Positions 3,326 through 27,456 of a stretch of DNA of 64,000 bases are shown here, one piece after another; the stretch's first letter is position 1, and the number at the start of each line of letters is the position of its first letter. Origin of the DNA: Hydrolagus colliei (lineage: Eukaryota); assembly GCA_035084275.1 (NCBI GenBank), contig CM068771.1, positions 1,488,001-1,552,000 on the forward strand. The letters run 5' to 3'. A program made the position numbers and the translations under genes. The notes under the pieces are model-generated. The model did not search any database. It was not told the origin of the DNA and saw only the letters and a list, made by a program, of their open reading frames with translations.

Positions 3326-3328
3326 GTA

Positions 3329-3585: not shown

Positions 3586-3845
3586 ACATAGTCTGTGTAT
3601 CTGGTAAGATAGACAGTTTGTGTGTTCATGCTGGTTTGTCTGGTATGATAGATAAAGAGTGCGTGTGTTAATGCTATTCTGTGTTCGGTATAGACGGACA
3701 GTGAGTGTGTGTATTGCTGGTGGATGTCTGGTGTGATGGACAGATAGGTGAAGTTGTTAAGGGTGAATTGGGAAGGATTGCATGTGACTTGAAGTGGCTG
3801 ATTTACTGCGATTGTGCTGTGACTCAGATCGGAAATTTTGTTTTA

Positions 3846-5318: not shown

Positions 5319-5639
5319 TAATTAATTAAAACAGTTTATTGCTGTTAACACAACCCTGGCTTCACCTGTCACAACCACTTATGCCATCATCTTGTCACTA
5401 TTCTGGCCATATTTATTTGCATAATAACCTGTAATATAGTTTATATTTATATACCGTATGTCTAATCTACCACTCCTGTTACCTCACCAGTGAGACAATT
5501 TGCATAGGAGTGACAATTTATTAGTTTATCTCAATTTAACACAAATCACAGAACAATCTGCATAATACCTGTTCAATGTCATCTCGATGGCTGTGTGGAA
5601 GATTGATTCAAGCTTTCTTTGCTTTTATTTCCTCTTCAG

Positions 5640-5662
5640 GATATCACGTCCATCGTTGACAG
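5640..5662 (+). CDS. TRIM gene A, 23-bp exon
   Basis: cttcag|GATATCACGTCCATCGTTGACAG|gt; DITSIVD(R). Canonical 23-bp TRIM micro-exon, phase 0/2. Confidence 0.8.
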
Positions 5663-6225
5663 GTCTGTAATATTTCCTTACATCCCTCTCGTTAGTGGTA
5701 TTTCCTATTCTCAGTGTGCATCAGAAGGTGATATTAGTCACAGAGAGACTTACGTGTGTGAGAGCCCAGAACATTATATTTCTCCAGGCTATTTTCAAAT
5801 ACTACAGGATATTTTGATAATGGTGAAGTCTTGTAGCTCAGTGGTGAGTGCACTCGCCTTGCAAGTGAGAGACCTGAGTTCATTTCCTGGCTTGGTACAA
5901 CCTTATTCATGGATAATAATCCCTCAAGAAAAAACAATTATAAATTGATTGATTAAACTTTAAATTGAATCCATATTATTAATGGGACACAAGAATGCTC
6001 AATTGGCTTCCCTGTTTCAACCACCAATATATTCGCTTTGCACTTTCTTCCCTGAGCGCTTTAGGATTCACAAATATGAAAAAAGCTTTCCAATCGACAA
6101 ACAACAGTATTTCTACTTAGTGCTTGGTGTCAAATAGGGAAACTTCCCTAATTTGCTGATGAAAATCTCCTGAATCATCAATATTGTGTGTAAATTTGTC
6201 TAAACAAGTTTCTATCTGTGCTCAG

Positions 6226-6341
6226 GTCTGATGTTGAAATCAAGAAACCCACAAAAGTGTCTGTTCATGTGGCTGAGGGGGATCTCAATGGGCCTCTGTG
6301 GAGCAGAGGGTGGAAACGGATGTTAAAGGGCATCATGGCAG
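6226..6341 (+). CDS. TRIM gene A, linker exon (116 bp)
   Basis: ctcag|GTCTGATG...ATGGCAG|gtaac; SDVEIKKPTKVSVHVAEGDLNGPLWSRGWKRMLKGIMA. Phase 2/1 fits the flanking exons. Confidence 0.82.
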
Positions 6342-6640
6342 GTAACACTGGCACTTACTGTGATCCTGAGATCAGAGTCTGACTCTGGGAATAGACGTGG
6401 AGTAAATGTCTTGTTCTCTCTCCTCATCTCCTCAGCCGGGAATGATCAATGAGATCATTGAGAGCTCAGCCCACCTCAGCCCTGTGATGGGCCCCCGGGT
6501 CACAGCCAGACATTACTGGTGTCCCTGGTGTAACCTGAGACACACAGAGCAGAAATCCAAACCTCACTGAATGAACCAGTGAAATATCATGTCAGCCATT
6601 CACCACTCGAGCACCAACATGTCAACATTCTCTGTTTCAG

Positions 6641-7155
6641 CTCCAGCCTCTGTGACTCTGGATCCTAACACAGCCCATCGCCAGCTCATCCTGTCTGAGG
6701 ACCGGACCCGAGTGAGATGCAGAGACAGAGATCAGCAGGTTCCTAGCACCCCGGAGAGGTTCCGTTACAAGCTCAGTGTCCTGGGGTCTGAGTGGTTCAG
6801 ATCAGGGAGACATTACTGGGAGGTGGGGGTGGAGAACAACACAGACTGGATAGTGGGGGTGGCCCAAGAGTCTTTGCCCAGGAAGGGGAGATTCACACAT
6901 GAACCTGAGACTGGAGTCTGGGCTGTGAGGCTGCTCAATGGGACATATGAAGCTCTAACTTCACCTCCTACTCCCCTCCGCCTGAGTGTGAGACCCCGGG
7001 TGTTGGGTGTGTACCTGGACTATGAGGGAGGACAGGTGTCGCTGTACGACGCTGACCAAATGTCTCATCTCTTCACATTCACCCACACGTTCACTGAGAA
7101 ACTCTACCCTTACTTCAGCACAGATTGTGACACTGACCTGACACTGATCAACTAG
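6641..7155 (+). CDS. TRIM gene A, terminal PRY/SPRY (B30.2) exon
   Basis: tttcag|CTCCAGCC; [21 protein letters not shown]...GRHYWEV...[17 protein letters not shown]...[13 protein letters not shown]. The five exons sum to 981 nt, in frame to TAG. Confidence 0.92.
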
Positions 7156-8519: not shown

Positions 8520-9040
8520 CACAAGGTTTGCTGAGGGGGGCGTGACGTGCTCACCGCCTCAGCAGAGCGCGGGCCGTGATTGATCACCTCGCTGACCAAT
8601 AGGAAACTACGGCTAAGGGAGGGCGGGTGTTCAAAACAGCCAATGGTAGTGCGGATGGGAATCGGTGATGGGGGGGGGGGTTCGTGAATGATTGAGGAGA
8701 ACATGATTGACAGCGAAGCTGACGAATGGGTAATTGGGGAGTGATGAACGTAACCAATCGGTAGCGAATAGGCGGGGACAGAGTGACGGTTGGTGGAAGA
8801 TTTAGAGGCGAGCACGTGATGGATGTGGGCACGCACCAATCAGAGTCTGGAGTCTGATTGACACAACCGTTAACCAATGGAAAGCTCTGTCCGACGCGGC
8901 GGGTGTTTGAAAAGGACCAATAGGGGGAGAGCGAGTGGGCGGGGGAGAGAGTGACGGTTGTGGGAGAAGCTCAGACATGGCGATGACAAGTGGAGCGGCA
9001 ACGAGCGGCTGGACAACAGGTCACTGACAGAGGGTCCGGT
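8520..9040 (+). promoter_or_regulatory. CpG-rich, multi-CCAAT (NF-Y type) promoter-like region with a possible first exon
   Basis: CCAAT at 8596, 8640, 8754, 8836, 8874 and 8917; ATTGG at 8733; TGACGT near 8545; GC boxes; high CpG density; candidate donor CCG|GTCAGT near 9038. Confidence 0.55.
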
Positions 9041-9049
9041 CAGTGAGAG

Positions 9050-11115
9050 AGAGAGTGAGAGTGAGAGAGAGAACGGGAGTGTGTGAGAGAGAGTGAGAGG
9101 GTGTGTGAGAGAAGGAGAGTGTATGAGAGAGAGAGTGAGTGTGAGAGAATGTGAGAGTAAATGTAATTGTGAGGGGGGTGGGGGGGCGGTGTGTGTGGGG
9201 GGTAAGGGGGTGTAAGTGTGTGTGTGGGGGGGGTAAGTGTGTGTGGGATGGGGGGGAGGGGGGTAAGTGTGTGTGACGATGAGTGTGTAAGTGTGTGTGG
9301 GGGGGAGGGGGGTGTAAGTGTGTGTGACGATGAGTGTGTAAGTGGTTGTGTGACAGTATGTCAGTGTGGGTGTGTAAGTATTTGTGTGAGGGGGTGTGTA
9401 GGTGTAAGTGTGTGGGGGGGGGGGAAGTGTGTGTGGGGGGGTGTAAGTGTGTGTGACGATGAGTGTGTAAGTGGTTGTGTGACAGTGTGTGAGTGTGTAA
9501 GTATTTGTGTGTGGGGGGGGTGAAAGTGTGTGTGGGGGTGTTTCTGTGGGGACACTGTAAGTGTGTGTGTGTGGGGGGGGTAAGTGTGTGTGGGATGGGA
9601 GAAAGGGGAGGTAAGTGTGCGTGACGATGAGTGTGTAAGTGGTTGTGTGACAGTATGTCAGTGTGTGGGTGTGTGTAAGTGTATGTGTGAGGGGGTGTGT
9701 AAGTGTGTGTGGGGGTGTTTCTGTGGGGACACTAAGTGTGTGTGTGTGGGGGGGGTAAGTGTATGTGGGAGGGGGGGGTGTAAGTGTGTGTGTGTGTGGG
9801 GGGGGGGGTAAGTGTGTGTGGGAGGGGTGTGTAAGTGTGTGTGGGGGGGTGTAAGTGTGTGTGGGATGGGGAGAGGGGGGTGTAAGTGTGTGTGTGTGTG
9901 GGAGGGTGTAAGTGTGTGTGTGGGGGGGGGGGGTAAGTGTGTGTGTGTGGGGGGGGTAAGTGTGTGTGGGAGGGGGGTGTAAGTGTGTGTGTGGTGGGGG
10001 GGGAAGTGTGTGTGGGATGGGGGGGAGGGGGTGTAAGTGTGTGTGACGATGAGTGTGTAAGTGGTTGTGTGACAGTATGTCAGTGTGTGGGTGTGTGTAA
10101 GTGTAAGTATGAGGGGGGGTGTAAGTGTGTGTGGGGGTGTTTCTGTGGGGACACTGTAAGTGTGTGTGTGGGGGGGGGGTAAGTGTGTGTGGGAGGGGGG
10201 GTGTAAGTGTGTGTGTGTGGGGGGGGGTAAGTGTGTGTGGAAGGGGGGTGGGGGTAAGTGTGTGTGTGGGGAGGGGGGGTGGTAAGTGTGTGTGGGAGGG
10301 GGGTGTAAGTGTGTGTGGGAGGCGGGTGTATGTGTGTGTGGGGGGGGAAGGTAAGTGTGTGTGGGAGGGGGGTGTAAGTGTATGTGCGGGGGGGGTAAGT
10401 GTGTGTGGGAGGGGGGTGTAAGTGTGTGTGTGTGGGGGGGGGTAAGTGTGTGTGTGTGTGGGGGGGTAAGTGTGTGGGAGGGTGTGTAAGTGTGTGTGTG
10501 TGGGGGGGGGTAAGTGTGTGTGGGAGGGGGGTGTAAGTGTGTGTGTGTGGGGGGGTGTAAGTGTGTGTGGGAGGGGGGGGGTGTGGGGGGGGAAGGTAAG
10601 TGTGTGTGGGAGGGGGGTGTAAGTGTATGTGTGGGGGGGGTAAGTGTGTGTGGGAGGGGGGTGTAAGTGTGTGTGTGTGGGGGGGGTAAGTGTGTGTGGG
10701 GGGGGTAAGTGTGTGTGGGAGGGTGTGTAAGTGTGTGTGTGTGGGGGGGGGGGTAAGTGTGTGTGGGAGGGGGGTGTAAGTGTGTGTGGGAGGGGGGTGT
10801 AAGTGTGTGTGGGGTGGGGTAAGTGTGTGTGGGATGGGGGGGAGGGGGGTGTGAGTGTGTGACGATGAGTGTGTAAGTGGTTGTGTGACAGCATGTCAGT
10901 GTGTGGGTGTGTGTAAGTATTTGTGTGAGGGGGTGTGTAGGTGTAAGTGTGTGTGGGGGGGAGAAGTGTGTGGGGGTGTTTCTGTGGGGACACTGTAAGT
11001 GTGTGTGTGGGGGGGGGTAAGTGTGTGTGGGATGGGGGGAGGGGGGTGTAAGTGTGTGTGTGGGGGGGGGGGTAAGTGTGTGGGGGGGGGGGGGGGAGGG
11101 GGGTGTAAGTTTGTC
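9050..11115. repeat. GT-rich complex minisatellite (gtaagtgtgtgtggggggg)n with a higher-order unit
   Basis: Directly visible. Longer blocks recur, e.g. gtgtgacgatgagtgtgtaagtggttgtgtgacag and gggggtgtttctgtggggacactgtaagt. Confidence 0.95.
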
Positions 11116-11686: not shown

Positions 11687-12889
11687 TATTAAATTAAACT
11701 CGTCCCCCAGTTTGGTTCATTTTCATAATAATAGTCATCTTATCAGAAAGACATGATATGGCGCTCCATTTAATGCAAGGATAATTATTTAAAATAAGCA
11801 AATATACGTCAAAGGGATGTAACATGTGTGTGTTGTTAATGGCAAACAGGCTTGGTGGCTGAAAGGGGGAATGGAAATTCCGTGTTAATGTGAAGGGGGC
11901 TGTGTGGGGTGTGCCAGCATGTACGGTATTAATGGGGTTTGTGAGGTTAACAAAACAACTCAACAACAACAATTTATGGAGCGCACTTTATGTGTGATAG
12001 CATTGTGTGGCAGTGGTGCAGGATGCTACCACAGATGAAATGCACTATGGAGGAGTCTGAGTTTGGTTTCCGTTCAGTAACTGGGAGCAGGTGGACCCTG
12101 GTGAGGACTGGTGTCATGGGGATACAGTGTTTTTGATATGAACTGCCCTTTTTTGTCCACCTCTCAGCATGAAATATCTGAAGCCTTTGTTCAGAATGAA
12201 AGCCAGGAAGAGAGAGCCAGTGAGGAAGAAAAGCAAGGAAGTAAACAGCTAAATGTTAAACAAACTTTACATTCCAACAAGGAAACCGGTCATTTGGTCC
12301 AGCTAGACCATCCCGGTATTATTAGTCAATATTCACTTTACAGTATATTTTGTGAAGCGCTTTGAGACTTCGATAAGATGTGAAAAACGCTATATCAAAT
12401 GCAAGGATTATTATTATTTTCCCATAGTAACTACAACAACAATAAATTACATTTGTGTAGCTCCTTTGATACTTGTGATATTTATCTAATACCCGTGTCC
12501 CCTGGTTTCACTCTGAAGTGGCCTGGTTCTAATTTTATTTTGTTTTAGATTCCCCACCAGATAAAATAGCTTCTCTGTATCTACCCAATCAATTCCTTTT
12601 ATCATCTTAAATATGTTGAACCTCCCACCTTCTAATTCAGAGGTGAGAGTGAGACATACAGAGCCAGACTGATGCACAATAACAATATTCATAGGTTCTT
12701 CTTTTCAGGATTCTGTGTACACTTCAATTCTCAATCCTGCTGTTTTTATTTACTCTACAGGGGTCCGAAAACCTGTGTTTTGTTTGCCTTCAGGTGACTG
12801 TCCCTTTAAAGAGCTGTTCTGTGAGCCTCACCCAAGCAGACACTTCAAGGCAAAGAGCAAGTCAGAAACAGCAAAGAGCGGATGGTAAA

Positions 12890-13210
12890 ATGGCGTCGGT
12901 AAAGGAACTAGAGAACAAGAGAAATGAATCCACTTGTTGAATCTGTCTGGAGTTTTACACGGATCTGGTGACTATAGATTGTGGGCACAACTACTGTGTG
13001 TGTCCTGTCCACAGTGCAGGCAGCAGATTCCCCAGCGGATTATTAGGCCCAACAGAATTCTTTCTAACATGGTGGAGAGTGTTCGGAGACTGAGCCTGAA
13101 TCCGTGATTGGAAGAGGTGGGAATCCAGTGTGAAGAACATGAGGAGAAGCTGAAACTGTATTTGCAAAACCGATCAAGTAGCGATCTGTGTGGTCTGTGT
13201 GATGTCCCTT
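12890..13210 (+). pseudogene. TRIM pseudogene B, RING/B-box remnant
   Basis: ATGGCG; MASVKELENKRNESTC*ICLEFYTDLVTIDCGHNYC...CPQCRQQIPQRIIRPNRILSNMVES...CEEHEEKLKL...TDQVAICVVC, with stops, a deletion and a frameshift. Confidence 0.85.
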
Positions 13211-13415
13211 GATCTCCTCATCCTCTCAATAAGATCATTGGGAGCTCGGCCACCTCAGCCCTGCGATGAGCCCCGTGTCACAGCCAGACATTACTGTTGT
13301 CCCTGGTGTAACCTGAGACACACAGAGCAGAAATCCAAACTTCACTGAATGAACCAGTGAAATATGTCAACCATTCACCACTCGAGCACCAACATGTCAA
13401 CATTCTCTGTTTCAT

Positions 13416-13895
13416 CTCCAGCCTCTGTGACTCTGGATCCTAACACAGCCCATCCCTGGCTCATCCTCTCAGGACTGGACTCGAGTGAAATACAGTGACA
13501 GAGATCAGCAGGTTCCTGACGGACCGGAGAGGTGACCCACTGTCCTGGGGTCTGAGGGGTTCACATCAGGGAGACATTACTGGGAGGTGGGGGTGGGGAA
13601 CAACACATACTGTATAGTGGGGGTGGTCCAAGAGTCTGTGCCCAGGAAGGTAGGTTTCATACATGACCCCGAGACTGGAGTCGGCTGTGAGGCTGTACAA
13701 TGGGAAATCTAAAGCTCTAACCTCACATCCTATCCCATCCTCCCCCTGAGTGTGAGACCCCAAGTACTGGGCGTGTACCTGGACTATGAGGGAGGACAGG
13801 TGTTGCTGTATGATGCTGACCACATGTGTCTTCACTTTCACCCACAGGTTCACTAAGAAACTCTTCTACACTGTGTGACACTGACCAGCTGACAG
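13416..13895 (+). pseudogene. TRIM pseudogene B, PRY/SPRY exon remnant
   Basis: Paralogous to 6641-7155. The acceptor AG is mutated to AT (tttcat|ctcc), and there are internal deletions and frameshifts. Confidence 0.88.
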
Positions 13896-14499
13896 GGGTG
13901 AGGGTGACTAATCAGAGAGAGGGTACGGGGGTTACTGGGCGGAGTGAGGGATGAGGGTGACCAATTGGAGGAAGGGTACAGGACCTGAGCAGGTGGGGAA
14001 GGGTCAGTATAGGGGCAGGGGACAGAGAGTAGGAAGTGTATGGGTGGTGGGAGTGGAAGGCTCCTGCAGCTCAGCGGTTAGAGCAACTCCAAATAATGGA
14101 GTTGGAGGAACATAGAAACAGAAGGAGGCCTTTCAGCCCCTCCACCTCTACCGCCCATTTTATAAGATCATGATTGACCTTGACTTCAAGTCCAGTTACC
14201 CCACTTTGCCCCATATCCTCTGAATCCATTGAACTAACAAACATTCATCCACCTCAGTCATGAAATTGCCAATGGATCGAGCCATAATCCACAGCTTTTT
14301 GGTGGAAGATAATTCCAGATTCCCACAAACATTTGGGTGATAAACTTTCTCCTATTTTTACTCCTAATTGGCCTGGCTTTAACTTTAAAATGATTCCCCG
14401 TCATGCTCCAGGGGATGCAATTTCTCTGTATCTACTCTATTGAATTGCTTTATAATTTTTAAATCCTGAATTAGATAACTTATCCTTCTAAATTCAGGG

Positions 14500-15065
14500 G
14501 ACCAGAGAGCAGGATATTGCAATATGCCCTCATAATTCAACCTGTTAAACCCTGCCGTGAAAGGCGCTCTACAAATGTAATTACATATTGTATTGGTATA
14601 ACAATAAACAGACAAATGTACAATCTCTCTGCGTCACATGTGAGCTATGATGTCAGGAATAACTGATGAGATTCAAGACACGACACAGAATGAGGAATAG
14701 ATACAGGAGCCATCTATATTGACATACCACTGTTAGTATCAAGACTATACAAATAAAATACATAATCCTTGTATTACTAAAATTAGGGAAACTCAGCAGG
14801 TTTATGCATCTTGTCCTCATAATTTAAACCAGTTAAGGCCTAGGATATTCTGATGTGAAAGGCGCTATACAAATGTAATTATGTATTGTATTGGTATTAC
14901 AATAAAACAGACAATGTACAATCTTTGTGAGCTGTGATATCAGCATTAACTGATGAGATATGAGACACGACACAGAATGAGGAACAGATACAGGAGCTGT
15001 CTGGATGGAGACACCAAAGTTAGTATCAGACTATATCAATAAAATAAATAATCCTTGTATTTCAT
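14500..15065 (+). repeat. About 300-bp direct tandem duplication, each unit with AATAAA
   Basis: gtgaaaggcgct(c/a)tacaaatgtaatta...aataaa...gagacacgacacagaatgagg occurs near 14558 and again near 14862. Confidence 0.75.
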
Positions 15066-15723
15066 ATTTCATGTAGTGTTTTTCACATCTTCTGGATGTA
15101 TCAAAGTGCTTCATAAAATACACTAAAGTTAATTTATGTCAATTTGTGGGTGAAATGTGGCAGCCAATTGGAATAGAGGAGTGTCACAAACAGTCATGGA
15201 CTATAGAGGTACTGTATTACAATTGTATCAGATTGTATAGAGGCGCTCATTGTTAGATATCAGTGTTAATATCCAACAATATAGAGATGTATATCAATGT
15301 TAAAATGATAATACCATATAGGCGCACACAAACTCAGACCAAGACATGCAAACATATACTGTATGCACAAATATGCACTGTGATAGACACATACAAAAAA
15401 AAATAGACTCGCATAAACAGACATGCAAATATATACAAATACAGGTACACAAGCACAACAACAACAATTATATCTGCGGTGCCTTTCAAATCGAGAGAAC
15501 ATTTAAAGGTGCTGGACAGTCAGTGTTTCGGATCCGAGCTGGGTTTGGGATTGAGGTGCGTGGAAGCAAGGAAGAGAGGGCAGATGGGTTAACTGACGGC
15601 ATGGTCAAAGAGGAGTGTCTTCAGGCAGGACTTGAAGGTGGCTAGGGAGGGACAAGGATTGACAGTGAGCACAAACACACACACAGATGTACAAACACAC
15701 ATAGATACATAAACATGCAAATA

Positions 15724-16870
15724 CAATAAAAGCCCGTTTATCTGTGACCCGATCAACTGTAACTTCCATATAAGCTCAAATAAAGGTCCCCATTCAAATA
15801 ACCGGATCTTACCTGGCACAATTGCTGTGGCATATTCATTGAGTCAATGGTCACAGAGAGTCCAGTACGATTAGTTCTGAATGCTGCCGTTAATGGCACT
15901 TCCGGTTTTTCCTCTTAAAACGGCACTGTCGGTTTTTCCCCTCTTCTTTATCTTTCTATCTCTCCCTTACCTCCCTTTCTCTGTCTCTTCCATTTCTTTC
16001 TATCTCTTTCTTTCTGTCTTTCTTTCTCGCTTTCTCCTTTTTTTCTCTCGTTCTCTTGTTCGTTCTTTGTCTCTCTCTCTCTCTCGTTCTTTCTTTCTCT
16101 CGTTCTTTCTTTCTCTCGTTCTCTCTCTCTCTCTTCTTTACTTTTGTTTTCTCTATCTCTCTCTATGACAGTTACTATATGATGCCTGTGTAGCCTGATG
16201 CGTAGGTTCATACACTTTTTTGATGGTGGAGAAGGAGAGATAGGAAGGGAGAGAGAGGGTGGGGGAGGAAAGAGGGATGGGAGAAAGAGAGAGGAGGGGA
16301 GAGAGAGGTGGGGGAGATGAGGGGAGAGAGAGGGAGATGAGTTGATTAATTTAGATGGAAAATGAGAGGAGTGGAGGGGGTTTCGAGCCATTGAGATGCC
16401 AGATTGACTTGNNNNNNNNNNNNNNNNNNNNNNNNNNNNNNNNNNNNNNNNNNNNNNNNNNNNNNNNNNNNNNNNNNNNNNNNNNNNNNNNNNNNNNNNN
16501 NNNNNNNNNNNNNNNNNNNNNNNNNNNNNNNNNNNNNNNNNNNNNNNNNNNNNNNNNNNNNNNNNNNNNNNNNNNNNNNNNNNNNNNNNNNNNNNNNNNN
16601 NNNNNNNNNNNNNNNNNNNNNNNNNNNNNNNNNNNNTGCCACTTTAGGAGGAAAAAACTCTTCCGTACATCATTGTAGAAGATTGCTTTGGGATTGTGTG
16701 CAGTTGATTACAGACTAGTCCATATTTATTGCTTTATTGGTAAGTATCTGTACAATATTTTATTATTATTTAGTCTATCATTAATATGGTATGTTTAAAA
16801 AAAAGTTTTTTTTAATGTTTAACCGGCAATGGCGGGGTCCCGAGGGTGCCGGATAAATGGGCTTTTACTA
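15724..16870. mobile_element. Tigger/pogo-like DNA transposon remnant with internal CT/GA microsatellites and a gap
   Basis: TA|CAATAAAAGCCCGTTTATCTG ... CGGATAAATGGGCTTTTACTA|TA: inverted termini (17/21) with TA flanks. Confidence 0.6.
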
Positions 16871-17129
16871 TAATAATATTAATAATTTTGACCAAATATA
16901 ATTCTATTGTTGTGTATTTGTGTATCTGTGTGCATTTGCATGTCTATTTACGTGAGTCTATATGTCTTTTTGTATTTGTATGCATCTGTCACTGTGCTTA
17001 TTAGTGTATGTGAGTTTGCGTGTCTTTATGTTCTCTGTGAATTTGTGTGTGCCTCTATGATGACATTATAATTTTAACAGTGACATCTCTATATCATCAG
17101 AAATTAATACTGACACCTCCATATACCCC

Positions 17130-17568
17130 AGTCCTTGCCCCAGCCTCCACTGGCTCCCTGTCTCCGAGAGGATCAATTTGAGGATCCTCAACCTTGTCTT
17201 CAAATCCTTCCACTCCTCTGCACCCCCTTACCTCTCTGAACTCCTCTCTCCTCAAACCAGCACCCATTGCCTTTGCTCAACTGGGTCTGGCCGCCTCATG
17301 TCCCCCGAATCCTCCATTCCACCCTTGGCGACCGTGCCTTCACTATGCCCCGAGGTTCTGGAATTCCCTTCCTCACTCCCTTCACTTCGTCCCCTCTTTT
17401 CCCAGTTTCAGGTCCCAACTCAAGACCTTTCTCTTCGACCATGGCTTTGGTCACCTTTCTACCCATGCCCCCGGCTTGGCCTCGGGATCCGATATTGTTA
17501 AGCGCTCTGAGACGCCATCTGGCATAGAGGGTGCTATATAGATCGAAGTTGTTGTTGTTGTTGTTGTC
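17130..17568 (+). mobile_element. L2-clade LINE 3' fragment
   Basis: LHWLP..RI.FKIL-type RT C-terminus, then tail aagcgctctgagacgccatctggcatagagggtgctatatag(ttg)n. Confidence 0.8.
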
Positions 17569-17980
17569 TGATATTAACATTGAACATCTCTTTCCAGTCT
17601 GATATAATAGTATAACCTCTATTCCAATTGGCTGCCACATTTCACCCACAAATTCATAGTAATTAACTTTACAGTATATTTTGTGAAGCACTTTGATACA
17701 TATAGAAGTTGCGAAAAGCTCTATATGAAATACAATGATTATGTGTTTTATTTAGATAGTCTGATACTAACAGTGGCATCTCATTATAGACAGCTCCTGT
17801 ATCTGTTCCTCATTGTGTCTCACATCTCATCACAATTAATCCTGACATCGTAGCTCACACGTCACACAGAGAGATTGTCTTGCTTTATTGTAATAACATT
17901 ACAATAAGTAATTACATCTGTAGAGCATCTTTCATGTCAGGGTTTAACACGTTAAATTATGAGGACAGGTGGCATAAACC

Positions 17981-18263
17981 GCTCCTGTGCCTCAGTGGTT
18001 AGAGCACTTGTCTTGCAAGCTGGAGAGACCAAGCTGGGGAGACCTGTGTTCGAATCCAGGTAGGTCAGGGCAAAACCTTCGGCAAATTTCCTTCCTCTGT
18101 GATTTCATTCCACGACTGTGTGTGGGACACTGCTGTGTGTAATTGGCTGCGACAATTTGCCCACAAATATATACAGTCAATTCACTTCACAGTATATTCT
18201 GTGAAGCGCTTTGGGATGTTGATAAGATGTGGAAGGCGCTATATCAAATGCAAGGATTATTAT
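17981..18263 (+). mobile_element. tRNA-derived SINE, full length
   Basis: A box (ctcagtggttagagc), B box (gttcgaatcc), core and tail; flanked by an ataaacc repeat. Confidence 0.85.
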
Positions 18264-18758
18264 AAACCTGCTCTCCATTCCCCTAAGGTTAGAAGCATGA
18301 GGGGTGAATTAATTGATGATTTTAAAATTATATAATGATTCAATAGTGTAGATACAGAGAAACTGTATCCTCTGGAGAATGAGGGGGAATCATCTGAAAC
18401 AAAAAGCCAGGCTATTTAGGAGTAAAACTAGTGGACAGTTTATCACCCAAATTTTAGTGGGAATCTGGAATTCTCTTCCCCTAAAAGACTGTGGATTATG
18501 GCTGGATACATTCACAATTTAGAGACTGAGGTTTAATAATTTTGGTAGTTTGGGGGATTAATGGGATATGGGGCAAAAGCAAGGTAACTGGTCTTGAGAT
18601 ACAGGTCAGTCATGATGGTATAGAATGTGTGGAACAGGCTGAAGGGGTTGAATGGCCTCTTCCTGTTTCTATGTTCCTATGTCACCTCCACTATCTGCCC
18701 AGTAACCACTGTACCCTCTCTCTGGTTGGTCACCCTCACCCCTGCCAGCTGGTCAGTG

Positions 18759-19264
18759 TCAGGCCTGTTGACACCATGTCAAGAAGCAAGGGTAGAGTTT
18801 CTCAGTGAACGTGTGGGTGAAAGTGAAGAGATGAGCCATGTGGTCAGCGTCGTACAGTGACACTTGTCCTCCCTCATAATCCAGGTACACGCCCAGCACC
18901 CGGGGACTCACACTCAGGGGGAGGGGGGTAGGAGGTGAGGATAGAGCTTCATATTTTGCATTATACAACCACACCGCCCAGACTCCAGTCTTAGAACCAG
19001 GTGTGAATCCCCCCGTCCTGGACGCAGACTCTCGGGCCACCCCCACTATATAGCGTGTGTTGTTCCCCACCCCCACCTCCCAGTAATGTCTTCCTGATGT
19101 GAACCCCTGAGACCCCTCAGACCCTAACTGGGGCCAGCTAAATGAACACTTCATCAAGTTAGCATCCTGCTGCTCCCTGTCATCGTATTTCAGTCGGGTC
19201 CGCTCCTCAGCCCGGATGAACTTGGGACGGGCTGTGTTAGGATCCAGAGTCACAGAGGCTGGAG
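18759..19264 (-). CDS. Intact TRIM-derived PRY/SPRY exon; candidate last exon of the stonustoxin-like gene
   Basis: tttcag|CTCCAGCC acceptor (phase 1), open for 168 codons: [15 protein letters not shown]...GRHYWEVGV...[17 protein letters not shown]...EKLYPCFLTWCQQA*. No TRIM coiled-coil or linker exons were found between it and the toxin-like ORF. Confidence 0.75.
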
Positions 19265-19370
19265 CTGAAACAGAGAATGTTGACATGTTGGTGCTCGAGT
19301 GGTGAATGGTTGACATATTTCACTGGCTCATTCAGTGACGTTTGGATTTCTGCTCTTTGTGTCTCAGATA

Positions 19371-19548
19371 AAAGGGAATTAGATCTTTATTTAGGGAGAA
19401 CAGGTCTATTAGGCTATGGGGAGCGGGCAGGGCAGTGGGATTGAATCACTCTTTTCAAAGAGCCGGCACAGACTAGATGGGCCGAATGGCCTCCTTTTGT
19501 GCCGTAATATTCTATGAATCTATGAATCTATGAATTATACCAGGAACA
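19371..19548 (+). mobile_element. CR1 3' tail inserted in the TRIM-derived intron
   Basis: aaagggaattagatctttatttaggg...(ctatgaat)n. TRIM-intron homology resumes on both sides. Confidence 0.85.
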
Positions 19549-21414
19549 CCTTTAATATCTGGCTATGACCTAGAGCCATATCAACACAGGGCTGAGGTGG
19601 GCTGAGCTCCCAATGATCTTATTGATTATACCTGGCTGAGGGGATGAGGAGAGAGAACAAGTGACAAAGCGAGTTCCAAAGCCTTGGGGCAGAGTGGCAG
19701 AAGGCATTGCCACCAATGGTGAAGCGGAGGATTCGGGGTACAATTAGGAGGCCAGACCTGGTGGAGCGAAAGCAACTATATTATTGTCATTACTGTACTT
19801 CCTCTCTGTTTATACTTACCCTATCCAATTCCTCTACCCTCTCCTCCAATATTGTGGTATGGTTGTATCCTCTTTTGTGAAGACAGAGCGAAGTACTCAT
19901 ACAAAGTAATCGTTCAGTGCATCAGCCATGCCATCTGCCTCCATAATAAGATTTCCACCTCGGTCCCTAATTGGCCCCACCCTTACTTTAACTAACTTTC
20001 TATTCTTGATTATGTAAATACTTGTAAATTACCTTAGGGTTTCCTTTAATGTTATATGTTACTCTTTTCTAAAACAATATAATCATGTTGCCCTCCTTAT
20101 TTCCTTTTTCAGTTCTCCTCTGCACCTCTTATATTCTGTTTGGTTGTCTGCTGAATTTTGGACCTGGCATTTGTCATCAGCCTCCTTTTTCTGTTTTATT
20201 TAATTCCCAATTTCCTGCGTCATTCAGGGAGGTTCCGATGCCCTTCTTTTTCTCTTTGTGGGAATGTATTTGTTCTGTCTGTGAACTACAACAACAACAA
20301 CTTCGATTTATATAGCGCCCTCCACACCGGATGGTGTCTCAGAGCACTATCCGCTACTTGAAGACTTCCCATTGCTCTTTAAATGTTTTACCTGCCAATC
20401 TTTCTTTCCAGTTCCCCTTGGCTATGGTTCTTTTTAAAGCACTGAAATTAGCCTTCTTCTAATTGGGTATCTTCAAGTTTGATCGTTTCTTGTCGCTTTC
20501 CATAAATACTCTGAATCTAATTATGTTGTGATTAATATTACCCAGATGAGGCTAGATTATTGAGGCTAGAGGGTTGCAGTGTCCCTAGCAGATAGGTAAG
20601 GTGCTGCTCCCTGATCTTGCACTGCGGTTCATTGAAACAGATTAGAAGACCTTGGATGAAGAGGTCATACTGCGAGTGGGAAGGAGAGTTGAAATGGCAA
20701 GAAACTGGTAGGTAATTGTTGTACTTGCTGAACTATCTCTGTATATTGCTCTGAACATCTCATCATCCGGTCCCTTTTATTCCACTACCCATACCATATG
20801 TCTAACTCGATGGAAATGTGTACATTACCCTAATCCTGATCTTGTATTTCATTCCCCATACCACAATCCTGATTTTGAAGACTCTGCTTAAACTAGCTTG
20901 TACATTAAAGATTGATATGAATTGATACAAATTTGATTTTAGATCTAGTGTTGAATTAATAACTGAATGGCTTCATTCTACACTGTAGCTCCCAATGTTT
21001 CTATGAACATAAGCAATTTATTTGCCTTCCTCTCCTTATATTCAAAATACTTTAAAGTGAGTATATGAAAGATTGTGTTGAGAGTCTCTGTTATTTCGCC
21101 TCTGACCACCCACACAATTTTATAAGGCATGTTTTTCTCTTATCTCTCTTTGATTATCGAGGTAATTTATTGTAATTGCAAGCTTTTTCTGGTCATCACT
21201 CCAATTTGGTTACAGAATCTCCTCCCGAATCCCATTTTCATCACTTTAGGTGTCAATGATAAAACCCCCAAAGTTGATCAGTAGTCTTGCTGATACTTTA
21301 TGTTTAATACTATCATCACATTATCCTTTTAAATTACAATTACATTATCCTAATGATGTAAGTTGTAGTAGAATCTTGATTAAAAACTTCATGCTCACAT
21401 TATTCCTACCTCTC

Positions 21415-24299
21415 TCATTTACCTTTTTGAAGAATTTCTGTCAAACTTTTTGTTTTCATCTTGCTCAGATCTGCAAAGAGTTGTTTCATACTGTTAAAGT
21501 TGTCGTCCTTTCTATCACTGTCACTACAATTGGTGGTGTCTCCAGAGGTTACGGTGTGGCTGAACATAGCTGAAGTGTTAAATCTAAAGTGAAATGGCAA
21601 CTTGTCAACTTTGGGACACGGCAATTGAGCTTGGATGATGGCCTTGAGAACAGCAGGATCCTGTCCATCTGCGAAGGTGACCAGCACACGGATGTTCTCA
21701 GTAATATCTTTGCTAAACATGGAAATCAATGAATTAAATTGACATTCCTGTCCAGATGTTAATTGCACTAAATTGGCTTGGACAACAAGGCACAAGGCAT
21801 CGAGTTGTTTTACACCTTTTTGAGAAGAAAATAGATCTTTAATCTGATAATGGAGCTTGCAACATCTGATGTATTCGGGGATGCGTTTATTTTGTAATGT
21901 GTGTCCAAATCTGAGGATGTCTACTATAGTCAGAGTGAAAGGAATCGCGAATCCCTCTTGGTGGTTGATTTCGTAGATAACGAATGAAGGTATATCAGCA
22001 TGGGAGCTGTTTGTTTCTTCTTCCATCAATTTATAACGGAAAGTGTCCCCCTGCTCCACGCCGAGGACATAGTTCATCATGTCATTGATAAGGTTCTTTT
22101 TTCCAAATCCTCTTTCTCCAAGAAGCAAGATTGTCTTCGCATTGTGTGTGGGTGAGTGGCTTCCAAGGCTGTATTTTATAACCTGTCCATTCTTACCAAG
22201 TTTCTCTGTGTTTAAAGGGAGCTTGTATATAGCGTACTTGCTTGTTAACAAAGTGCTTCCTATGAGAGGTATTCGGACCGGTGACTTTGGTGTGTTGTCT
22301 ATTGTTATTGAAGCCAGGTGACTGGGTGCACTCTCCACCTGTCCACACACAGCAGAAACTCTCATTGTGTAAGTTGTGCTGGGTTTGAGCTCCTTCAACA
22401 AGTAAAGAGTTTCATTGCCTTTCGTCCTGAGCTTTTCCCATGTGTTGGCCTCAGGTGTGGAGATGACGTTCATGGTTTGTCTATATTCTAATTTGTAGTA
22501 ATCTATACTGACTCCATGTCCAATCTTCGTAGGTCTTTCCCAGGAGACTTCCACTTCAAAACCCTTTACCTGGCATATTGATACATTCTCAGGTGCACTT
22601 GTGGGTAGGGTAGTCACAATCACAATATTGCTGGGTGGGCTACACCCTACTCTATATTGGAGCAGATATTCCTCGAATGTAGATAAATCAGTTATGGTGC
22701 AGATATTTGATTCTACCTCTGTTTTAAGAGTTGTCCTTTCTTCTATCTGGGTGCTGCGGTATTCCACCCAGTACCGGCCAGACTTTTCATTGCCAGAGTT
22801 TAGTGCCTGTAACCGCAGTGTTATACTGTTATGTGTCTTTCCTTCAACTGATGGTGCCTGGGGTTGTGCTGGAGGCTTGAAGCACTGGCTCACCAACACT
22901 CCTTCTTCGTACAAGTATATGGAAGCTCCCACATGCTCTTTCTCTGGCATAGAAGCAACAATGAACTTAGTATTTTTATCTTCTTTGTTGGATGTGTAAA
23001 ACTTGGTGAATAATTTTGTCTGCTCCCACATTTTACTGTGCACGGTGTCTGAGTGGAACCATTGCTTCTGATCTGAAGTTGGAATCTGGGTCTTCTCAGT
23101 GGTTTCATGTTGAAGATAATTGGTCATTTCTAACAGATACAAATCATCCTGATGCAGTGATGTGAACATAAAGCAGACCACATACTTTGTGGTCAGATCA
23201 TATATCTCACTATCGATCTCCCCGCGTGATTTTAACATTTTTATGCCATTCATTTTGCTGATGTAACCTCTGACCAGTGACATCTCCTTGTTCTTATCAT
23301 CCATCCATTGTGTGAGTGACTGCTGTCTGAATGGGGATTGTTGGATCTTCTTCAGAATATCCACCAGTTTACCTTCTTCCTCCCCACCTCCTCGTATGTT
23401 CGGCAACACTCTGGACAAGTCCTTCTGGAAACCATCTTTGTGCTCCATGCACATTGCTCTGAATCTCCGGATCTTTTTCGTTATCTCTGGACATTGATCA
23501 CTGACAGGGTCTTTCATCATATCATTGCACCTCATCTCAACCTCATTGAAATGCTCCAGAACAGCCTGAGACCGATTGACCAGATTTATACTGATGTCCC
23601 GTATAAGCTGAGCTGCTTTTTGGTCAAGGGCATTGAGTGGATAGAGCCAGGCTTTCACAGGCACGGCTTGTTTTCCATCCTCCCCCAATAGCAGCGGTAG
23701 AGTTGCGTAAACGTTCATAGCATCTTCGTATGTGGTGGGATTGTTTGGCATAGCAAAATCGCCATAGAAAGTGCAGCTAAATTTCTGGGTATTTACTTTC
23801 ACTTCCTTTTTCATATTCAGTGAAGCTTCGCCCTGGATTCCAACCTCTGGTATGATTTTAATTGAAACTTCCATTGTACCCTGAACATCTGTTACTGTCT
23901 CTGAAGAAGAGACTTCTCGATCAAACACAAAGAATGCCTGAGCGCCATACAGCACTGCTGTCACCACGTGGGTAGCTGAGCCCTGTTCAAACATATCAGG
24001 GTAAGATACATTCTGTCGCCCCAAGTGGGTCATTGTCAATTGCTCAAATGTTGTTGTGGTGGAATATTGGAGGGTCACACGGGCCTGCTGCTCAGATTTC
24101 TTTCTGTCATTGAGAAACTTGGCAGAACCGCCCACATCGACCAATCCACCCAGAAAGCTCCCCTTCAATGTCGCTGTGACATTCAGGGCTTTAGCTTTGT
24201 CCTCAATACAGTCTGAGGCCATTACGTGAAACTCAGTATTCGGCTGTGGTCTCACATACACGTTCTTGCTCAATGTGTCGAGGTCCCACAGTGTGACAC
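21415..24299 (-). CDS. Stonustoxin/verrucotoxin-like protein, large exon (MACPF-like, helical, thioredoxin-like, 2x FN3, degenerate GTPase)
   Basis: ttttccag|GTGTCACA acceptor. SNTX motifs: SFLGGLVDVGGSAKFL, ARVTLQY, ATHVVTAVLYGAQAFFVFD, FSCTFYGDF, PVKAWLYPL, VVCFMFTSL, GASIYLYEEG. Then two FN3 repeats and KTILLLGERGFGKKNLIN...LTIVD...LDALCLVVQA...VLVTFAD. Confidence 0.93.
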
Positions 24300-24699
24300 C
24301 TGGAAAATCAAATGAGGAAACATATTAGTACTCAGTGTAGTACAACAGCAATATTACATTTATACAGCAACATTCTCATAGAATCATAGATTCTTATGGC
24401 ACAGAAGGAGGCCATTTGGCCCATCAAGTCTATGTTGGAGCTTGAGAAAGAGCAATTCAATCCCATTCCCCAGCTCCCTCGCCATATCCATGCAACAACG
24501 AAAACGAAATTACATTTATATAGCGCCTTTCACGCCGGGTGGACATCCCAAGGTGTTGAACAATCAGGTCGGGACCAGAACAGTGGGGGAGGGGTCAGGG
24601 TAGGAGGAAGGAGAGTAGCAGAATTGACTGTATATTTGTGGGCAAAATGCGGCAGCCAATTGTGCACAGCAGTGTTCCAGAAACAGTTATGCAAGTGGG

Positions 24700-25215
24700 A
24701 TTAGGGGAGAAAGGGGGGGAAAGGGTAAGGGGGAGAGAGAGGGAAAGGTGGGGTGGGGTAAAGTCAGGGAAGTAAAGGGGGAAGAAAGAGGGATAAGGGG
24801 AGAGAGGGAGGGTAAGGTGGTTGGGGGGGATAAAATCAGGGAGAATTGTGGGGAGAAAGGGGGGTAAGGGGGAAGAGGGAGAGAAGTGGGAAAAGGAGGA
24901 GAGATAGAGAATTGGGGAAAAGGGAGCAGATGGAAGGAAGAGGGAGAAGAAAAGAGATGGAGGGAAGAAGAGAGGGAAGAAATGGGGGAAGAGAGGGAGG
25001 GGAAAGGAAGGGAAGGGGATGGAGAGGGTAGGAGTGAAAGAGCGAGAGAAAGGAAAGGGGGGAAGAGAGATGAGGGAAGCAGGGGGAAAGAAAGAGGCAA
25101 TTAAAGAGGGGGTAGAGGGAGACAACGAAGGAAGGGAAAGGAGACAGACAGACAAAGGGGGGAAAGGGAGTGAGGGAAGGAAAGTGGGTGAAGTGTAAGG
25201 GGCAAAGCGGAGGGA
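24700..25215. repeat. Purine-rich (GA) low-complexity tract
   Basis: Almost entirely G/A on the + strand; lies in the toxin-gene intron. Confidence 0.9.
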
Positions 25216-25384
25216 GTCAATCAACAGTCAGTTAGCCACTCTCCCTGCCATCCCTAGCGCTAGAGCCACAATCTCAAGTATATGGTTTCTCGACACCTGT
25301 GGGTATGTGTGCGCATGTGGGCAGGCGCTGTGTATGTCTGTGGGGAGGGGCCGTCCTACCCAAATAAATGTTTACCTCTCTTTT

Positions 25385-25925
25385 AAAATTTGTTATGGAA
25401 TCGGCCTCCACCAGCTTTTCAGGCAATTCATTCCAGATTCGAACAACTCACTGAGTAGAAACATTTCTACTGACCTCCCCGCGGCTTCTTTTTGAATCTA
25501 TTTTAAATCTGTGACCACGAGTCACTGATACACCCACAAGTGGAAACAGTTTTTCCATGTTTACTCGATTGAATCCACTCATGATCTTGAAAACCTTTAT
25601 TTGGTCTCCTTGTAACCTTCTCTGCTCCAATAGGCATAAACCTAGCCTCTCTACCCTTTCCTCATAACTGAAGACCCTCATTCCTGGTACCATGCTGGTA
25701 AATCTCCTCTTCTCCCTTTCCAATGCCTTAACATCCTTCCTAAAGTGTGGTGACCAGAATTGAGCACAGTACTCCAGCTGAGGCCTAACCAATGTGCTAC
25801 AGAGGTTAGTCAGAACTTTCTGATTTTTGTACTCTATGCCCTATTTATAAAGCCTAGTATCCCGTATTCTTTTTTTTTAACAGCATTCTCTACCTGTACT
25901 GCCACCTTCAAATAATAACTTGCAC
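25385..25925 (-). mobile_element. CR1 LINE RT 3' fragment
   Basis: ORF 25448-25792: VRPQLEYCAQFWSPHFRKDVKALER...RRLQGDQIKVFKIM. Confidence 0.88.
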
Positions 25926-26384
25926 AAACCCCCACGTCTCTCTGTTCCTTCACCGGCCTAGAAGGGAGGAAGTGAGGCTGAGGTAATGCGTGATTGAGTT
26001 CCAGAGTGTGGGAGCAGAGAGGCTGAAAGCTCAGCCACTAATGGTGGGGCGGGTCGAGTGGGAGACATGGTGCAGACCGGAGCCCTCTGAACAGATGGAG
26101 TGGGCAGGTTGGTAGGCTACCAGCAGGTCAGAGAGGTAGGAGTGGGAAATGCCAGCGATAGCCTTGAAAGTGTGGATGAGGATCTTGAAATTTATCCTCT
26201 GACAGACGAGGAGCCAATGCAGCTGGGCAAGGGGTCGTAGCGCCGGGTTCAGGAGAGGACACGAGCTGCAGAATTTTGGATGGTCTGCAGATTGAGAATG
26301 GAAGAGTTGGGAAGGCCAACAAAGGGAGTTTCTGTAATCAAGTCTTCCTGGGACAAATGTATGGGTGAGATTTCTGCAGCCTAT

Positions 26385-26900
26385 CCACTTGCTCCATTAA
26401 GCACCCGCCTCCGCGACCACATAACCCCCACCCTCGCCCGTCTCCACTGGCTCCCCATCCTCCAGAGGATCGAGTTTAAGATCCTCGTCCTCACCTACAA
26501 GGCCTTACACGACCTTGCCCCATCCTACTTAACCAATCTATTCTCCCCCTACACGCCCACCCGGACCCTCCATTCAACAGGACTTGGCCTGCTCCAAGCC
26601 CCCCGCCCGAACCGCCCCACCATCGGAGGCCGGGCCTTCAGTTTCTCCGCTCCCACCTTATGGAATGCCATCCCTCAATCCCTCTATTTTGTCTCTTCCC
26701 TTTCCTCTTTCAAGGCCGGTTTGAAGACTTTCCTCTTCGATCGTGCCTTTTGTTCCACCCCGAACTCTTTTACCTGCCCTTCGTGTTTCACCCCTTCCCA
26801 AACACTCCCCTCCCAGCTCGGGTCACACGCCTCCTGTTCAGCGCCTTGGGACGTCCTCCCGACATGAAAAGCGCTCTATAAATGTAAAGTGTTGTTGTTG
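26385..26900 (+). mobile_element. L2-clade LINE 3' fragment
   Basis: [38 protein letters not shown]...LWNAIP, with a (ttg)n tail. Confidence 0.88.
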
Positions 26901-27365
26901 TAGAGTAAACGTATGGGACAGGCTGCGTGGTAGTGATGGAAGAAATTATTGAAATTCCAATGATGCGGCATTCCCACCTACTCATCATCCCCCACCTTTT
27001 CTTTTTGTGGGGGTCTGAGCCCATCCATGTGAAGAATTCTGAATTGTTATTCATATCCACGACTATATGTGGGACACTACTGTGCACAATTTGCTGCTGC
27101 ATTTTGCCCACAAATAAATGGTCAATTCAATTTACAGTGTATTCTGTGAAGTACTTTGAGACGACGCGAAAGGTGCTATTATTATATTCCATGTCAAGGG
27201 ACCCATATTAATGTAAGTTGTTGTCAGTGCTGCTGATATCATTAGGTCCACTGTCATGTTTGTTTCATTTCCAGATAATATTGTATACACTTTTTACTTT
27301 CTCTATCTCAACATATGGGTGTAGCAGAGCACAGACTAGGTAGAGCAGTTACTGTCTTACATTAC

Positions 27366-27456
27366 CTGGGATCAGAGAGTCTGAGCGACAGTCATACAAC
27401 ATCCCCAACTGGAAAGGGCGGCCTAAACACGCCACCTCTGTATTCACATTCGCCAT
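27366..27456 (-). CDS. Stonustoxin/verrucotoxin-like protein, first coding exon
   Basis: ATG at 27456; MANVNTEVACLGRPFQLGMLYDCRSDSLIP-G|gtaat, the SNTX-family LGRPFxLGMLYD motif. The phase-1 donor matches the acceptor at 24299. An acceptor upstream at 27484-27483 implies a further 5' exon. Confidence 0.92.

Follow-up and report, generated by a model that had tools for sequence, protein, structure and literature searches.

Classical stonustoxin (SNTX) genes have three exons. Their products of ~700 amino acids (aa) combine a MACPF/CDC domain with a FAT-like helical domain, a thioredoxin-like domain and a C-terminal PRY/SPRY (B30.2) domain, the architecture represented by PDB entry 4WVM. Beside them stands an unnamed family of ~1250-1330 aa in sharks, rays, turtles, crocodilians and ray-finned fishes; these long SNTX-like forms correspond to the 'lost third exon' sntx-like genes (PMC10566576). 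B30.2 exons have been found to undergo exchange or conversion among the NLR and finTRIM genes of zebrafish (PMC2657112, PMC4852459). Here we analyze a stonustoxin-like gene in a stretch of 64,000 nucleotides from the chimaera Hydrolagus colliei (contig CM068771.1, positions 1,488,001 to 1,552,000; hereafter the window, to which all coordinates refer). A B30.2 exon lies downstream of this gene on the same strand, and an original prediction, made from the letters alone, had proposed that the two are spliced together, as an independent re-acquisition of B30.2 by capture of a TRIM exon.

The chimaeric layout and the TRIM origin of its last exon are real and conserved, and the layout is present, but undescribed, in RefSeq. 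The fusion is thus not new as a gene model: a fused model of Callorhinchus milii (XP_007895419.1) has stood in RefSeq since 2014, though undescribed. We found no paper that describes the fused layout; the stonefish genome paper covers bony fishes only. The reading that we favor, with somewhat better than even confidence, is that the gene belongs to an SNTX-like subfamily of chimaeras in which a truncated exon 2 is combined with a captured TRIM39-like B30.2 exon, the copy of that exon in the window being in the course of degeneration. The subfamily has been seen so far in chimaeras (Holocephali) only.

The stonustoxin-like gene body and its splice sites

All features of the gene lie on the minus strand of the window, which contains six N runs. 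Exon 1 (27366-27456) comprises the start codon and 30 codons in all plus 1 nt, reading ATG...CCAG/GTAATG (slashes mark exon boundaries). It is 93.5% identical to residues 1-31 of the Callorhinchus protein P0001, and no signal peptide is evident. Intron 1 (24300-27365; 3066 nt), which contains transposon fragments, closes with the acceptor ttttccag/GT at 24300/24299. Exon 2 (21423-24299; 2877 nt) is a frame of 958 codons without interruption, and its 3' end reads CAAAAAG/GTAAATGA. The donor, AAG/GTAAAT (21415-21425), is in phase 1 and is followed by an in-frame TGA (21417-21415) six bases into the intron. In a simple position weight matrix it scored 8.7 bits, the highest value of any GT across the exon 2 span. 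The unspliced form encodes 991 aa with the C-terminus QKGK, and two AATAAA motifs found by motif scan (21166-21171 and 21017-21022) are candidate ends for this short isoform.

Intron 2 (19265-21422; 2158 nt) is homologous over its first ~690 nt to the intron of a Callorhinchus paralogue. At its end, the acceptor ttctctgtttcag/CTCCAGCC at 19264 starts an exon that stays open until a stop codon at 18761-18759. Joining the three exons (91+2877+506) yields 3474 nt, equivalent to 1157 aa. The exon coordinates, the donor with its stop inside the intron, the pyrimidine-AG acceptor, the length of the join and the AATAAA motifs were all found where the original prediction had placed them. Its donor and acceptor are also phase-compatible (both phase 1), and the identical splice appears in the RefSeq models of three Callorhinchus paralogues.

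Within intron 1, an open reading frame at 25448-25792 (minus strand) resembles the C-terminal part of a LINE reverse transcriptase, as judged from the translation by eye. Repeats related to it recur in the window (families I2 and I6).

Exon 2 encodes, in order, a MACPF/CDC domain (24294-23563), a stonustoxin helical domain (23562-23278), a thioredoxin-like domain (23247-22873), two FN3 domains (22872-22258) and a degenerate septin/AIG1-like GTPase domain (22200-21424). Residues 2-486 match stonustoxin alpha and beta (PDB 4WVM chains A and B) with E = 1e-100 to 1e-103. Pfam recovered the helical domain (Stonustoxin_helical, PF21109; 124.5 bits), the thioredoxin-like domain (Thioredoxin_11, PF18078; 137.2 bits) and both FN3 stretches (PF00041; 63.7 bits). 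The MACPF_SNTX profile scored 25.3 bits for exon 2 alone, slightly below the cut-off of 27; the full-length relative P0001 reached 33.9 bits. Septin scored 17.6 bits on the GTPase-like domain, under its cut-off of 26.2. Aligned with the long forms, the P-loop reads GERGFGKK (22096-22119) in place of the GATGSGKT of full-length relatives, and the G3 region reads VDILRFG (21904-21924) in place of IDTPGFG and is followed by a 6-aa insertion. The domain matches neither the canonical G1 (GxxxxGK[ST]) nor the canonical G3 (DTPG) motif.

All 958 residues of exon 2 are collinear with the long SNTX-like forms, with 47-52% identity to shark and ray members; identity to P0001 is 71% over 962 aa. In the long forms, the FN3 domains are followed by the septin/AIG1-like GTPase domain and then by a coiled-coil/Cys-rich tail of ~270 aa. 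The homology of exon 2 to full-length relatives ends exactly at the donor and the ~270-aa tail is absent. Relaxed tblastn searches of intron 2, in the window and in Callorhinchus, detected no trace of the tail past the donor. These results uphold the earlier statement that the GTPase homology stops at the donor without a C-terminal extension. The identification of a stonustoxin-like MACPF/helical/thioredoxin/FN3/GTPase-like gene that lacks the usual tail holds as well, with Pfam, 4WVM and the long-form alignments in agreement.

Compared with its nearest Callorhinchus paralogue, exon 2 has a ratio of nonsynonymous to synonymous divergence (dN/dS) of 0.39, falling to 0.26 in the MACPF region, at a dS of 0.41. 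The gene body is intact and, by these ratios, under purifying selection, and we therefore regard it as that of a working gene.

TRIM origin of the B30.2 exon

Three copies of the B30.2 exon with flanks are present in the window (A, B and C), copy C being the third exon of the join. Copy C (18759-19264, minus strand; phase 1) consists of 167 codons plus the stop, ends ...YPCFLTWCQQA and contains an SPRY domain and a partial PRY domain according to Pfam. It is preceded by the proximal 103 nt of a TRIM last intron (19265-19367), recognized by alignment with TRIM39-like flanks; these 103 nt supply the polypyrimidine-AG acceptor and contain an in-frame ATG at 19316. An interspersed-repeat insertion (19368-19534), with copies elsewhere in the window (family D4) and in Callorhinchus loci, splits this remnant from a distal piece of the last intron (19535-19661). 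The distal piece is 83.5% identical to 6410-6533 upstream of exon A and matches the last intron of Callorhinchus TRIM39-like genes. On the other side, copy C is followed by a TRIM-type 3' flank, the remainder of an inverted-duplication arm (16893-18758), whose homology to the sequence that follows copy A reaches 18403 and whose homology to the sequence that follows copy B reaches 16893.

Copy C together with its intron flank and 3' flank shows 81-89% nucleotide identity to TRIM39-like loci of the window and of Callorhinchus, where this intron flank and acceptor also precede the B30.2 exons of TRIM39-like genes. The 5' breakpoint of the TRIM homology, at ~19661, falls inside the last intron, ~40 nt short of the expected penultimate TRIM exon. 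No minus-strand TRIM exons (RING, B-box, coiled-coil) able to own copy C are present within the window. The nucleotide homology and the position of the breakpoint thus bear out the proposal that the exon has a TRIM-derived flank and no TRIM exons of its own. As a separate matter, the ~110-nt intron flank was considered as a constrained element and rejected: a synonymous divergence of ~0.1 already predicts the 91-92% identity that it shows to TRIM flanks of Callorhinchus, so that special constraint is needless.

Copy A terminates the 3' part of an apparently intact TRIM39-like gene on the plus strand (2553-7155). Its coiled-coil exons (2553-2651, 3092-3325 and 6224-6367) were located by tblastn with Callorhinchus TRIM39-like proteins, and its B30.2 exon (6641-7155) matches PRY at 1e-21 and SPRY at 1.6e-23 in Pfam. 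The RING/B-box exon of this gene is expected off the window or in the gap-rich region 4000-5300. Copy B belongs to a TRIM pseudogene on the plus strand (12794-13866) with a broken RING/B-box exon (12794-13213) and a frameshifted B30.2 exon (13412-13866), the latter carrying at least 4 frameshifts and an acceptor changed from AG to AT. Copies B and C lie on the two arms of an inverted duplication of ~2.3 kb (13226-15476, plus strand, and 19625-16893, minus strand), centered near the N run at 16412-16636. An assembly fold-back was rejected as its cause because the arms, at 78-80% identity, are too diverged. In the nucleotide tree A and C are sisters (99/99), making A the closest relative of C. 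The decayed sister copy on the opposite arm that the original prediction described therefore exists, as copy B; what its inventory left unmentioned was the third, intact copy A, the frameshift at the 3' end of C and the diverged PRY half of C.

A maximum-likelihood tree placed all SNTX-linked B30.2 domains inside a holocephalan TRIM39-like clade (98/95), where they did not group with each other. When the tree was extended with the PRY/SPRY domains of nine SNTX-like proteins of the classical ~700-aa type (paddlefish, gar and teleosts), the placement in the TRIM39-like clade was retained (98/97) and the classical domains formed a separate clade (100/100), with 26-36% identity to the B30.2 domain of P0001. 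Forcing the classical and the holocephalan SNTX-linked domains into a joint clade cost 60.8 log-likelihood units and was rejected (AU p = 0.0009). The B30.2 domain of the best-matching Callorhinchus gene, LOC103181032, has 64-78% protein identity to Callorhinchus TRIM39-like proteins, and the top matches of copy C among solved structures were TRIM21 and butyrophilins, with 4WVM absent from the 60 best. The phylogeny that the original prediction had called for thus groups the exon with TRIM39-like genes and not with SNTX SPRY domains. On this sequence evidence, both the TRIM origin of the exon and the independent re-acquisition of B30.2 are well supported.

The same data bear on a different history, in which B30.2 is the ancestral third stonustoxin exon, retained while the FN3 and GTPase domains joined exon 2 and overwritten later by gene conversion from TRIM genes. 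Conversion of B30.2 between gene families is documented in zebrafish (PMC4852459), and ongoing conversion would produce both the species-wise grouping seen in the nucleotide tree and the varying lengths of TRIM flank. However, all the non-holocephalan long forms listed are without SPRY, as is the canonical long form of Callorhinchus, P0019, and it is a truncated GTPase domain, instead of the thioredoxin-like domain, that precedes B30.2. Moreover, the TRIM homology spans the intron, the 3' flank and ~1.9 kb beyond, which indicates a segmental copy and not a short conversion tract, and the joint clade with classical PRY/SPRY is rejected. A complete overwrite would in any case amount in practice to a new acquisition. 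We consider a retained exon very improbable.

How the TRIM exon came to be renewed at the individual loci is a narrower question. In a nucleotide tree that included the flanks, the window copies clustered together and the Callorhinchus copies clustered together. The length of TRIM intron kept upstream of the exon differs by locus (~27 nt; 105 nt; 103 nt + insert + ~120 nt; at least 135 nt). Gene bodies have a dS of 0.41 as against 0.16-0.23 for the B30.2 exon (copy C versus the others), so that the bodies diverged as paralogues much earlier. Truncation and donor, being shared, speak for an old common arrangement; the B30.2 exons, which are young and locally related, speak for subsequent replacement by, or gene conversion from, neighboring TRIM genes. 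Repeated capture and gene conversion are both compatible with these data.

Counterparts in Callorhinchus milii and the condition of copy C

The best database match to the window gene was Callorhinchus milii LOC103181032, an 'uncharacterized protein' of 1159 aa with 71% identity. Its fused model is identical across two RefSeq releases on two assemblies (XP_007895419.1 and XP_042200731.1). The three exons and the acceptor flank of the window recur at this locus, whose donor reads CATAAAG/GTAAGTGA, and the protein junction, ...VLHK-A-PASLTLDPNT..., equals that derived in the original prediction. LOC103181032 is a paralogue and not the orthologue, as dS is 0.41 in the gene body versus ~0.1 in neighboring TRIM sequence. 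The same splice is modelled in LOC103179749 (K-A-PAFLTLDPNT) and LOC103173967 (K-A-PASLTLDPNT). The donor AAAG/GTAAGTGA with its in-intron stop is kept in all four Callorhinchus paralogue loci inspected (L001, L003, L004 and L005), and three of the four have a same-strand B30.2 exon 2.5-5.5 kb downstream.

The layout is conserved in chimaeras and annotated inconsistently: some models fuse the parts, some pair a short gene with an SPRY-only gene, and others are of the 'classical' 700-aa type. Short Callorhinchus models ending in QKGK are represented by P0002 and P0004. The RefSeq model XP_042200713.1 joins the conserved donor to other, non-homologous 3' exons; as far as a gene model can tell, such use fits a working donor. 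In LOC103181208 (L005, 14413-20008) the current 2021 RefSeq model uses the donor, skips the B30.2 exon (16910-17422) and joins two unrelated 3' exons (19660-19812 and 19886-20008), while the 2014 annotation had divided the locus into two genes, a short SNTX-like gene (P0004) and a 200-aa SPRY-only gene (P0236). The window contains no homologue of the 3' exons of XP_042200713.1 or of the small exon that lies upstream in P0236. These models suggest that one donor may serve different terminal exons in different paralogues. The coupling to B30.2 claimed for the window gene is therefore matched by the same splice in three Callorhinchus models, but was overstated in view of the skipped SPRY exon of LOC103181208.

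Ensembl and UniProt contain Callorhinchus models named 'stonustoxin subunit alpha-like' (among them P0055 and P0070; ~704 aa) that join the thioredoxin-like domain directly to B30.2 and skip the FN3 and GTPase-like region. Because their junction lacks a canonical donor-acceptor pair, they are probably artefacts of homology projection. A corresponding 704-aa isoform of the window gene, spliced from an internal phase-1 donor after the thioredoxin-like domain, was considered and rejected, since no strong phase-1 site exists there in the window. Concerning SPRY-only products, in-frame ATG codons in the conserved intron flank, at 19316 (minus strand) and 6589 (plus strand), open SPRY-only reading frames of 185 and 188 aa, respectively, and the Ensembl Callorhinchus SPRY-only models P0230 and P0241 begin at the equivalent ATG.

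Taken to its limit, the disagreement among models could mean that chimaeric genes do not exist at all. In that case the SPRY exons would be debris of TRIM duplications or SPRY-only genes that start at the ATG of the intron flank, and the fused models would be prediction artefacts that arise by chaining homology to classical stonustoxins. The split of one paralogue into P0004 and P0236 in 2014, the Ensembl SPRY-only models starting at the ATG equivalent to 19316, the ~704-aa models that skip a region lacking a strong phase-1 donor in the window, and the 2021 model of LOC103181208 that leaves out its SPRY exon are all as this explanation would have it. In addition, a search with a 320-aa junction-spanning piece of P0001 found no junction-spanning protein in the protein collection used, the matches covering the SPRY half alone, an uninformative outcome that we nevertheless count against a fused gene. 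Yet a same-strand SPRY exon 2-5.5 kb downstream, in three of the four Callorhinchus loci and in the window and always in phase with the conserved donor, is hard to reconcile with debris, as is the identity of the LOC103181032 fused model in two releases on two assemblies. The B30.2 domains of P0001 and P0005 retain nearly all conserved positions, as expected of expressed exons, and the window holds no minus-strand TRIM exons to own copy C. We therefore judge the absence of any chimaeric gene improbable.

The condition of copy C itself is a separate matter. Pfam assigned 79.8 bits to SPRY (PF00622) and 23.4 bits to PRY, below the cut-off of 27.5, with the PRY match spanning only 1-29 of the profile's 49 positions. 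A set of 41 chondrichthyan TRIM B30.2 domains defines 72 positions with a conservation of 90% or more; copy C departs from the consensus at 15 of these, compared with a family median of 2, with 3 for copy A and with 1-4 for the SNTX-linked domains of Callorhinchus. Among the residues lost are ERF of the PERF motif and one conserved Trp. A 1-bp deletion near the 3' end turns the terminal ...DLTLxx strand of all relatives into QQA followed by the stop. AlphaFold2, run for copies A and C with one shared 35-sequence alignment, gave copy C a mean predicted local distance difference test score (pLDDT) of 71.7, with residues 1-50 below 50 and residues 51-160 at 76-95. Copy A reached a mean of 95.6, with all strands placed including residues 165-169. 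The terminal branch of copy C in the maximum-likelihood tree is 0.88 versus a median of 0.23, and its lineage carries 86 private nucleotide changes, distributed 34/30/22 over the codon positions.

The original prediction had argued that copy C is used because it stays open. When 86 random changes were simulated, 5.5% of the sequences stayed stop-free, and C is the most degenerate B30.2 exon of its clade; the argument is thus weak. Taken together, the profile, alignment and model data indicate that the exon is probably under relaxed constraint, i.e. decaying. Substitution ratios were tried as a test of copy C function and set aside. dN/dS is 1.1-1.5 in every B30.2 pair (A, C, Callorhinchus L001/L002 and real TRIM genes), and since even bona fide TRIM genes show such values, the ratio cannot separate selection from decay. 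In the TRIM39-like B30.2 exons, first and second codon positions have changed more than third positions, which suggests diversifying selection on the whole exon family. Diversifying selection has been reported for finTRIM and TRIM5.

Several observations weigh against decay of copy C. Its frame has been kept through several in-frame indels and without a stop in 167 codons (P ~0.055 if neutral), the SPRY core motifs are kept and confidently modelled by AlphaFold2, and its most diverged patch coincides with a region that varies in relatives (P0241). Owing to this combination, the exon may have undergone fast adaptive change instead. The evidence for decay and for the chimaeric layout is further tempered by the uninformative dN/dS (1.1-1.5 everywhere), by the fact that AlphaFold2 confidence is no measure of stability, and by the ability of RefSeq models to chain exons from protein homology alone, one paralogue having been split into two genes in 2014.

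If these points are given full weight, the fusion would be the working product of this gene, with B30.2 kept by selection as a recognition module and its odd sequence adaptive. The splice sites are strong and phase-matched, the arrangement is conserved across paralogues, and the open frame of copy C stands beside a sister, B, with at least 4 frameshifts. A well modelled SPRY core, the dN/dS above 1 of the family's B30.2 exons and the position of the most diverged patch in a loop that is also variable in P0241 would fit as well. Adaptation would, however, have to account for the loss of 15 of the 72 conserved positions, the ERF of PERF and the Trp among them, where the Callorhinchus counterparts have lost 1-4, and for a deletion that removes a terminal strand found in all relatives. 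The PRY half is not predicted to fold, the 34/30/22 spread over codon positions is compatible with absent constraint, and the search with the P0001 junction piece returned SPRY-half matches alone. A working fusion in this gene is therefore doubtful, although of the alternatives it deserves the most serious consideration.

We thus retain the reading in which copy C is degenerating within an otherwise conserved layout. Given this degeneration, the main product of the window gene is probably the 991-aa short form, or else a fusion with a crippled PRY half. The window taken alone is of lower interest because its B30.2 copy looks degenerate.

Proposed history, neighboring features and comparison with known systems

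On the favored reading, the ancestor would have been the widespread long form, with MACPF/CDC, helical and thioredoxin-like domains, two FN3 domains, a septin/AIG1-like GTPase domain and a coiled-coil/Cys-rich tail, its coding sequence divided between a short exon 1 and a single, very large exon 2. Most vertebrates have the perforin-like module of this family in combination with a GTPase and tail. In the chimaera subfamily, exon 2 would have been shortened just past the GTPase-like domain, whose motifs degenerated, such that the reading frame now ends at a consensus splice donor. A neighboring TRIM39-like gene would have contributed its 3' end (partial last intron, B30.2 exon and 3' flank), located 2-5.5 kb downstream on the same strand; in the window, this fragment is one arm of the inverted duplication. 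As both splice sites are in phase 1, splicing of the donor to the TRIM acceptor would substitute a TRIM-type B30.2 domain for the lost tail. This would be the second acquisition of B30.2 in the stonustoxin family, independent of the classical PRY/SPRY. Judged from domain content, the most likely role of the protein is that of a cytosolic immune effector, a pore-former or membrane-attack protein whose targeting module would have been exchanged for a fast-evolving TRIM recognition domain.

A bolder extension, which we consider unlikely, is that exchangeable 3' exons dock at the conserved donor, and that TRIM39-like B30.2 exons of the surrounding TRIM cluster have been repeatedly copied or converted into this position. 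The genes would then be a MACPF counterpart of the fish NLR-B30.2 genes and a convergent second origin of MACPF plus B30.2 among stonustoxins. If true, it would describe diversifying cytosolic pore-formers with swappable recognition heads of TRIM type.

Should the fusion be expressed, a perforin-like pore-former and B30.2 would have been joined a second, independent time in the stonustoxin family, with the B30.2 domain taken ready-made from a fast-evolving TRIM cluster. It would add a MACPF example to the shuffling of B30.2 exons among immune families (NLR-B30.2 and finTRIM), and would constitute a natural experiment in the exchange of a targeting module on a membrane-attack scaffold, from GTPase plus coiled-coil tail to B30.2. 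The findings are also relevant to annotation, in view of the three competing kinds of model in use for these loci (fused, short with an SPRY-only neighbor, and 'classical' 700 aa).

Further features of the window were recorded. The first exons of another TRIM gene (RING, B-box and start of the coiled-coil) are at 60757-61446 and 61753-61989 on the plus strand; this gene is closest to Callorhinchus 'nuclear factor 7, brain-like', with 54.5% identity. The interspersion of TRIM and SNTX-like genes in the window is also seen on Callorhinchus scaffold MU249860.1. A 23-bp TG/G-rich minisatellite of ~47 copies with strong GC skew (9733-10842) yields a spurious 707-aa open reading frame (8870-10993, minus strand). 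ARAGORN reported a tRNA-Phe (GAA) at 43230-43300 on the minus strand, which could be a real tRNA gene or the head of a tRNA-derived short interspersed element (SINE).

Among known genes, the closest to the window gene are Callorhinchus LOC103181032, LOC103179749 and LOC103173967, which share its exons, its donor with the in-intron stop, its acceptor flank, the junction K-A-PAS(L/F)TLDPNT and the domain order. LOC103181032 differs in a B30.2 domain that has nearly all conserved positions and the terminal strand, and in an extent of TRIM flank other than that of the window. With classical SNTX the window gene shares homology over the N-terminal 486 residues (E = 1e-103), the lack of a signal peptide, a short exon 1, a large exon 2 and a B30.2 domain as terminal exon. 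Unlike in classical SNTX, ~480 residues, comprising a pair of FN3 domains and a pseudo-GTPase, separate the thioredoxin-like domain of the window gene from its B30.2 domain, which is TRIM39-like and of another clade (26-36% identity, AU p = 0.0009). In contrast to the long SNTX-like forms, its P-loop and G3 region are degenerate and the ~270-aa tail is replaced by a donor and a TRIM B30.2 exon.

The broader parallel is with the fish NLR-B30.2 and finTRIM genes (PMC2657112, PMC4852459). There, as here, a single-exon B30.2 domain moves between clustered immune families as a C-terminal addition, with dN/dS values above 1 and indications of exchange or conversion. The window gene differs from fish NLR-B30.2 genes in its recipient, a MACPF/CDC relative with a pseudo-GTPase and not a NACHT-LRR protein, in its TRIM39/A33-like donor, and in its occurrence in Holocephali and not in teleosts.

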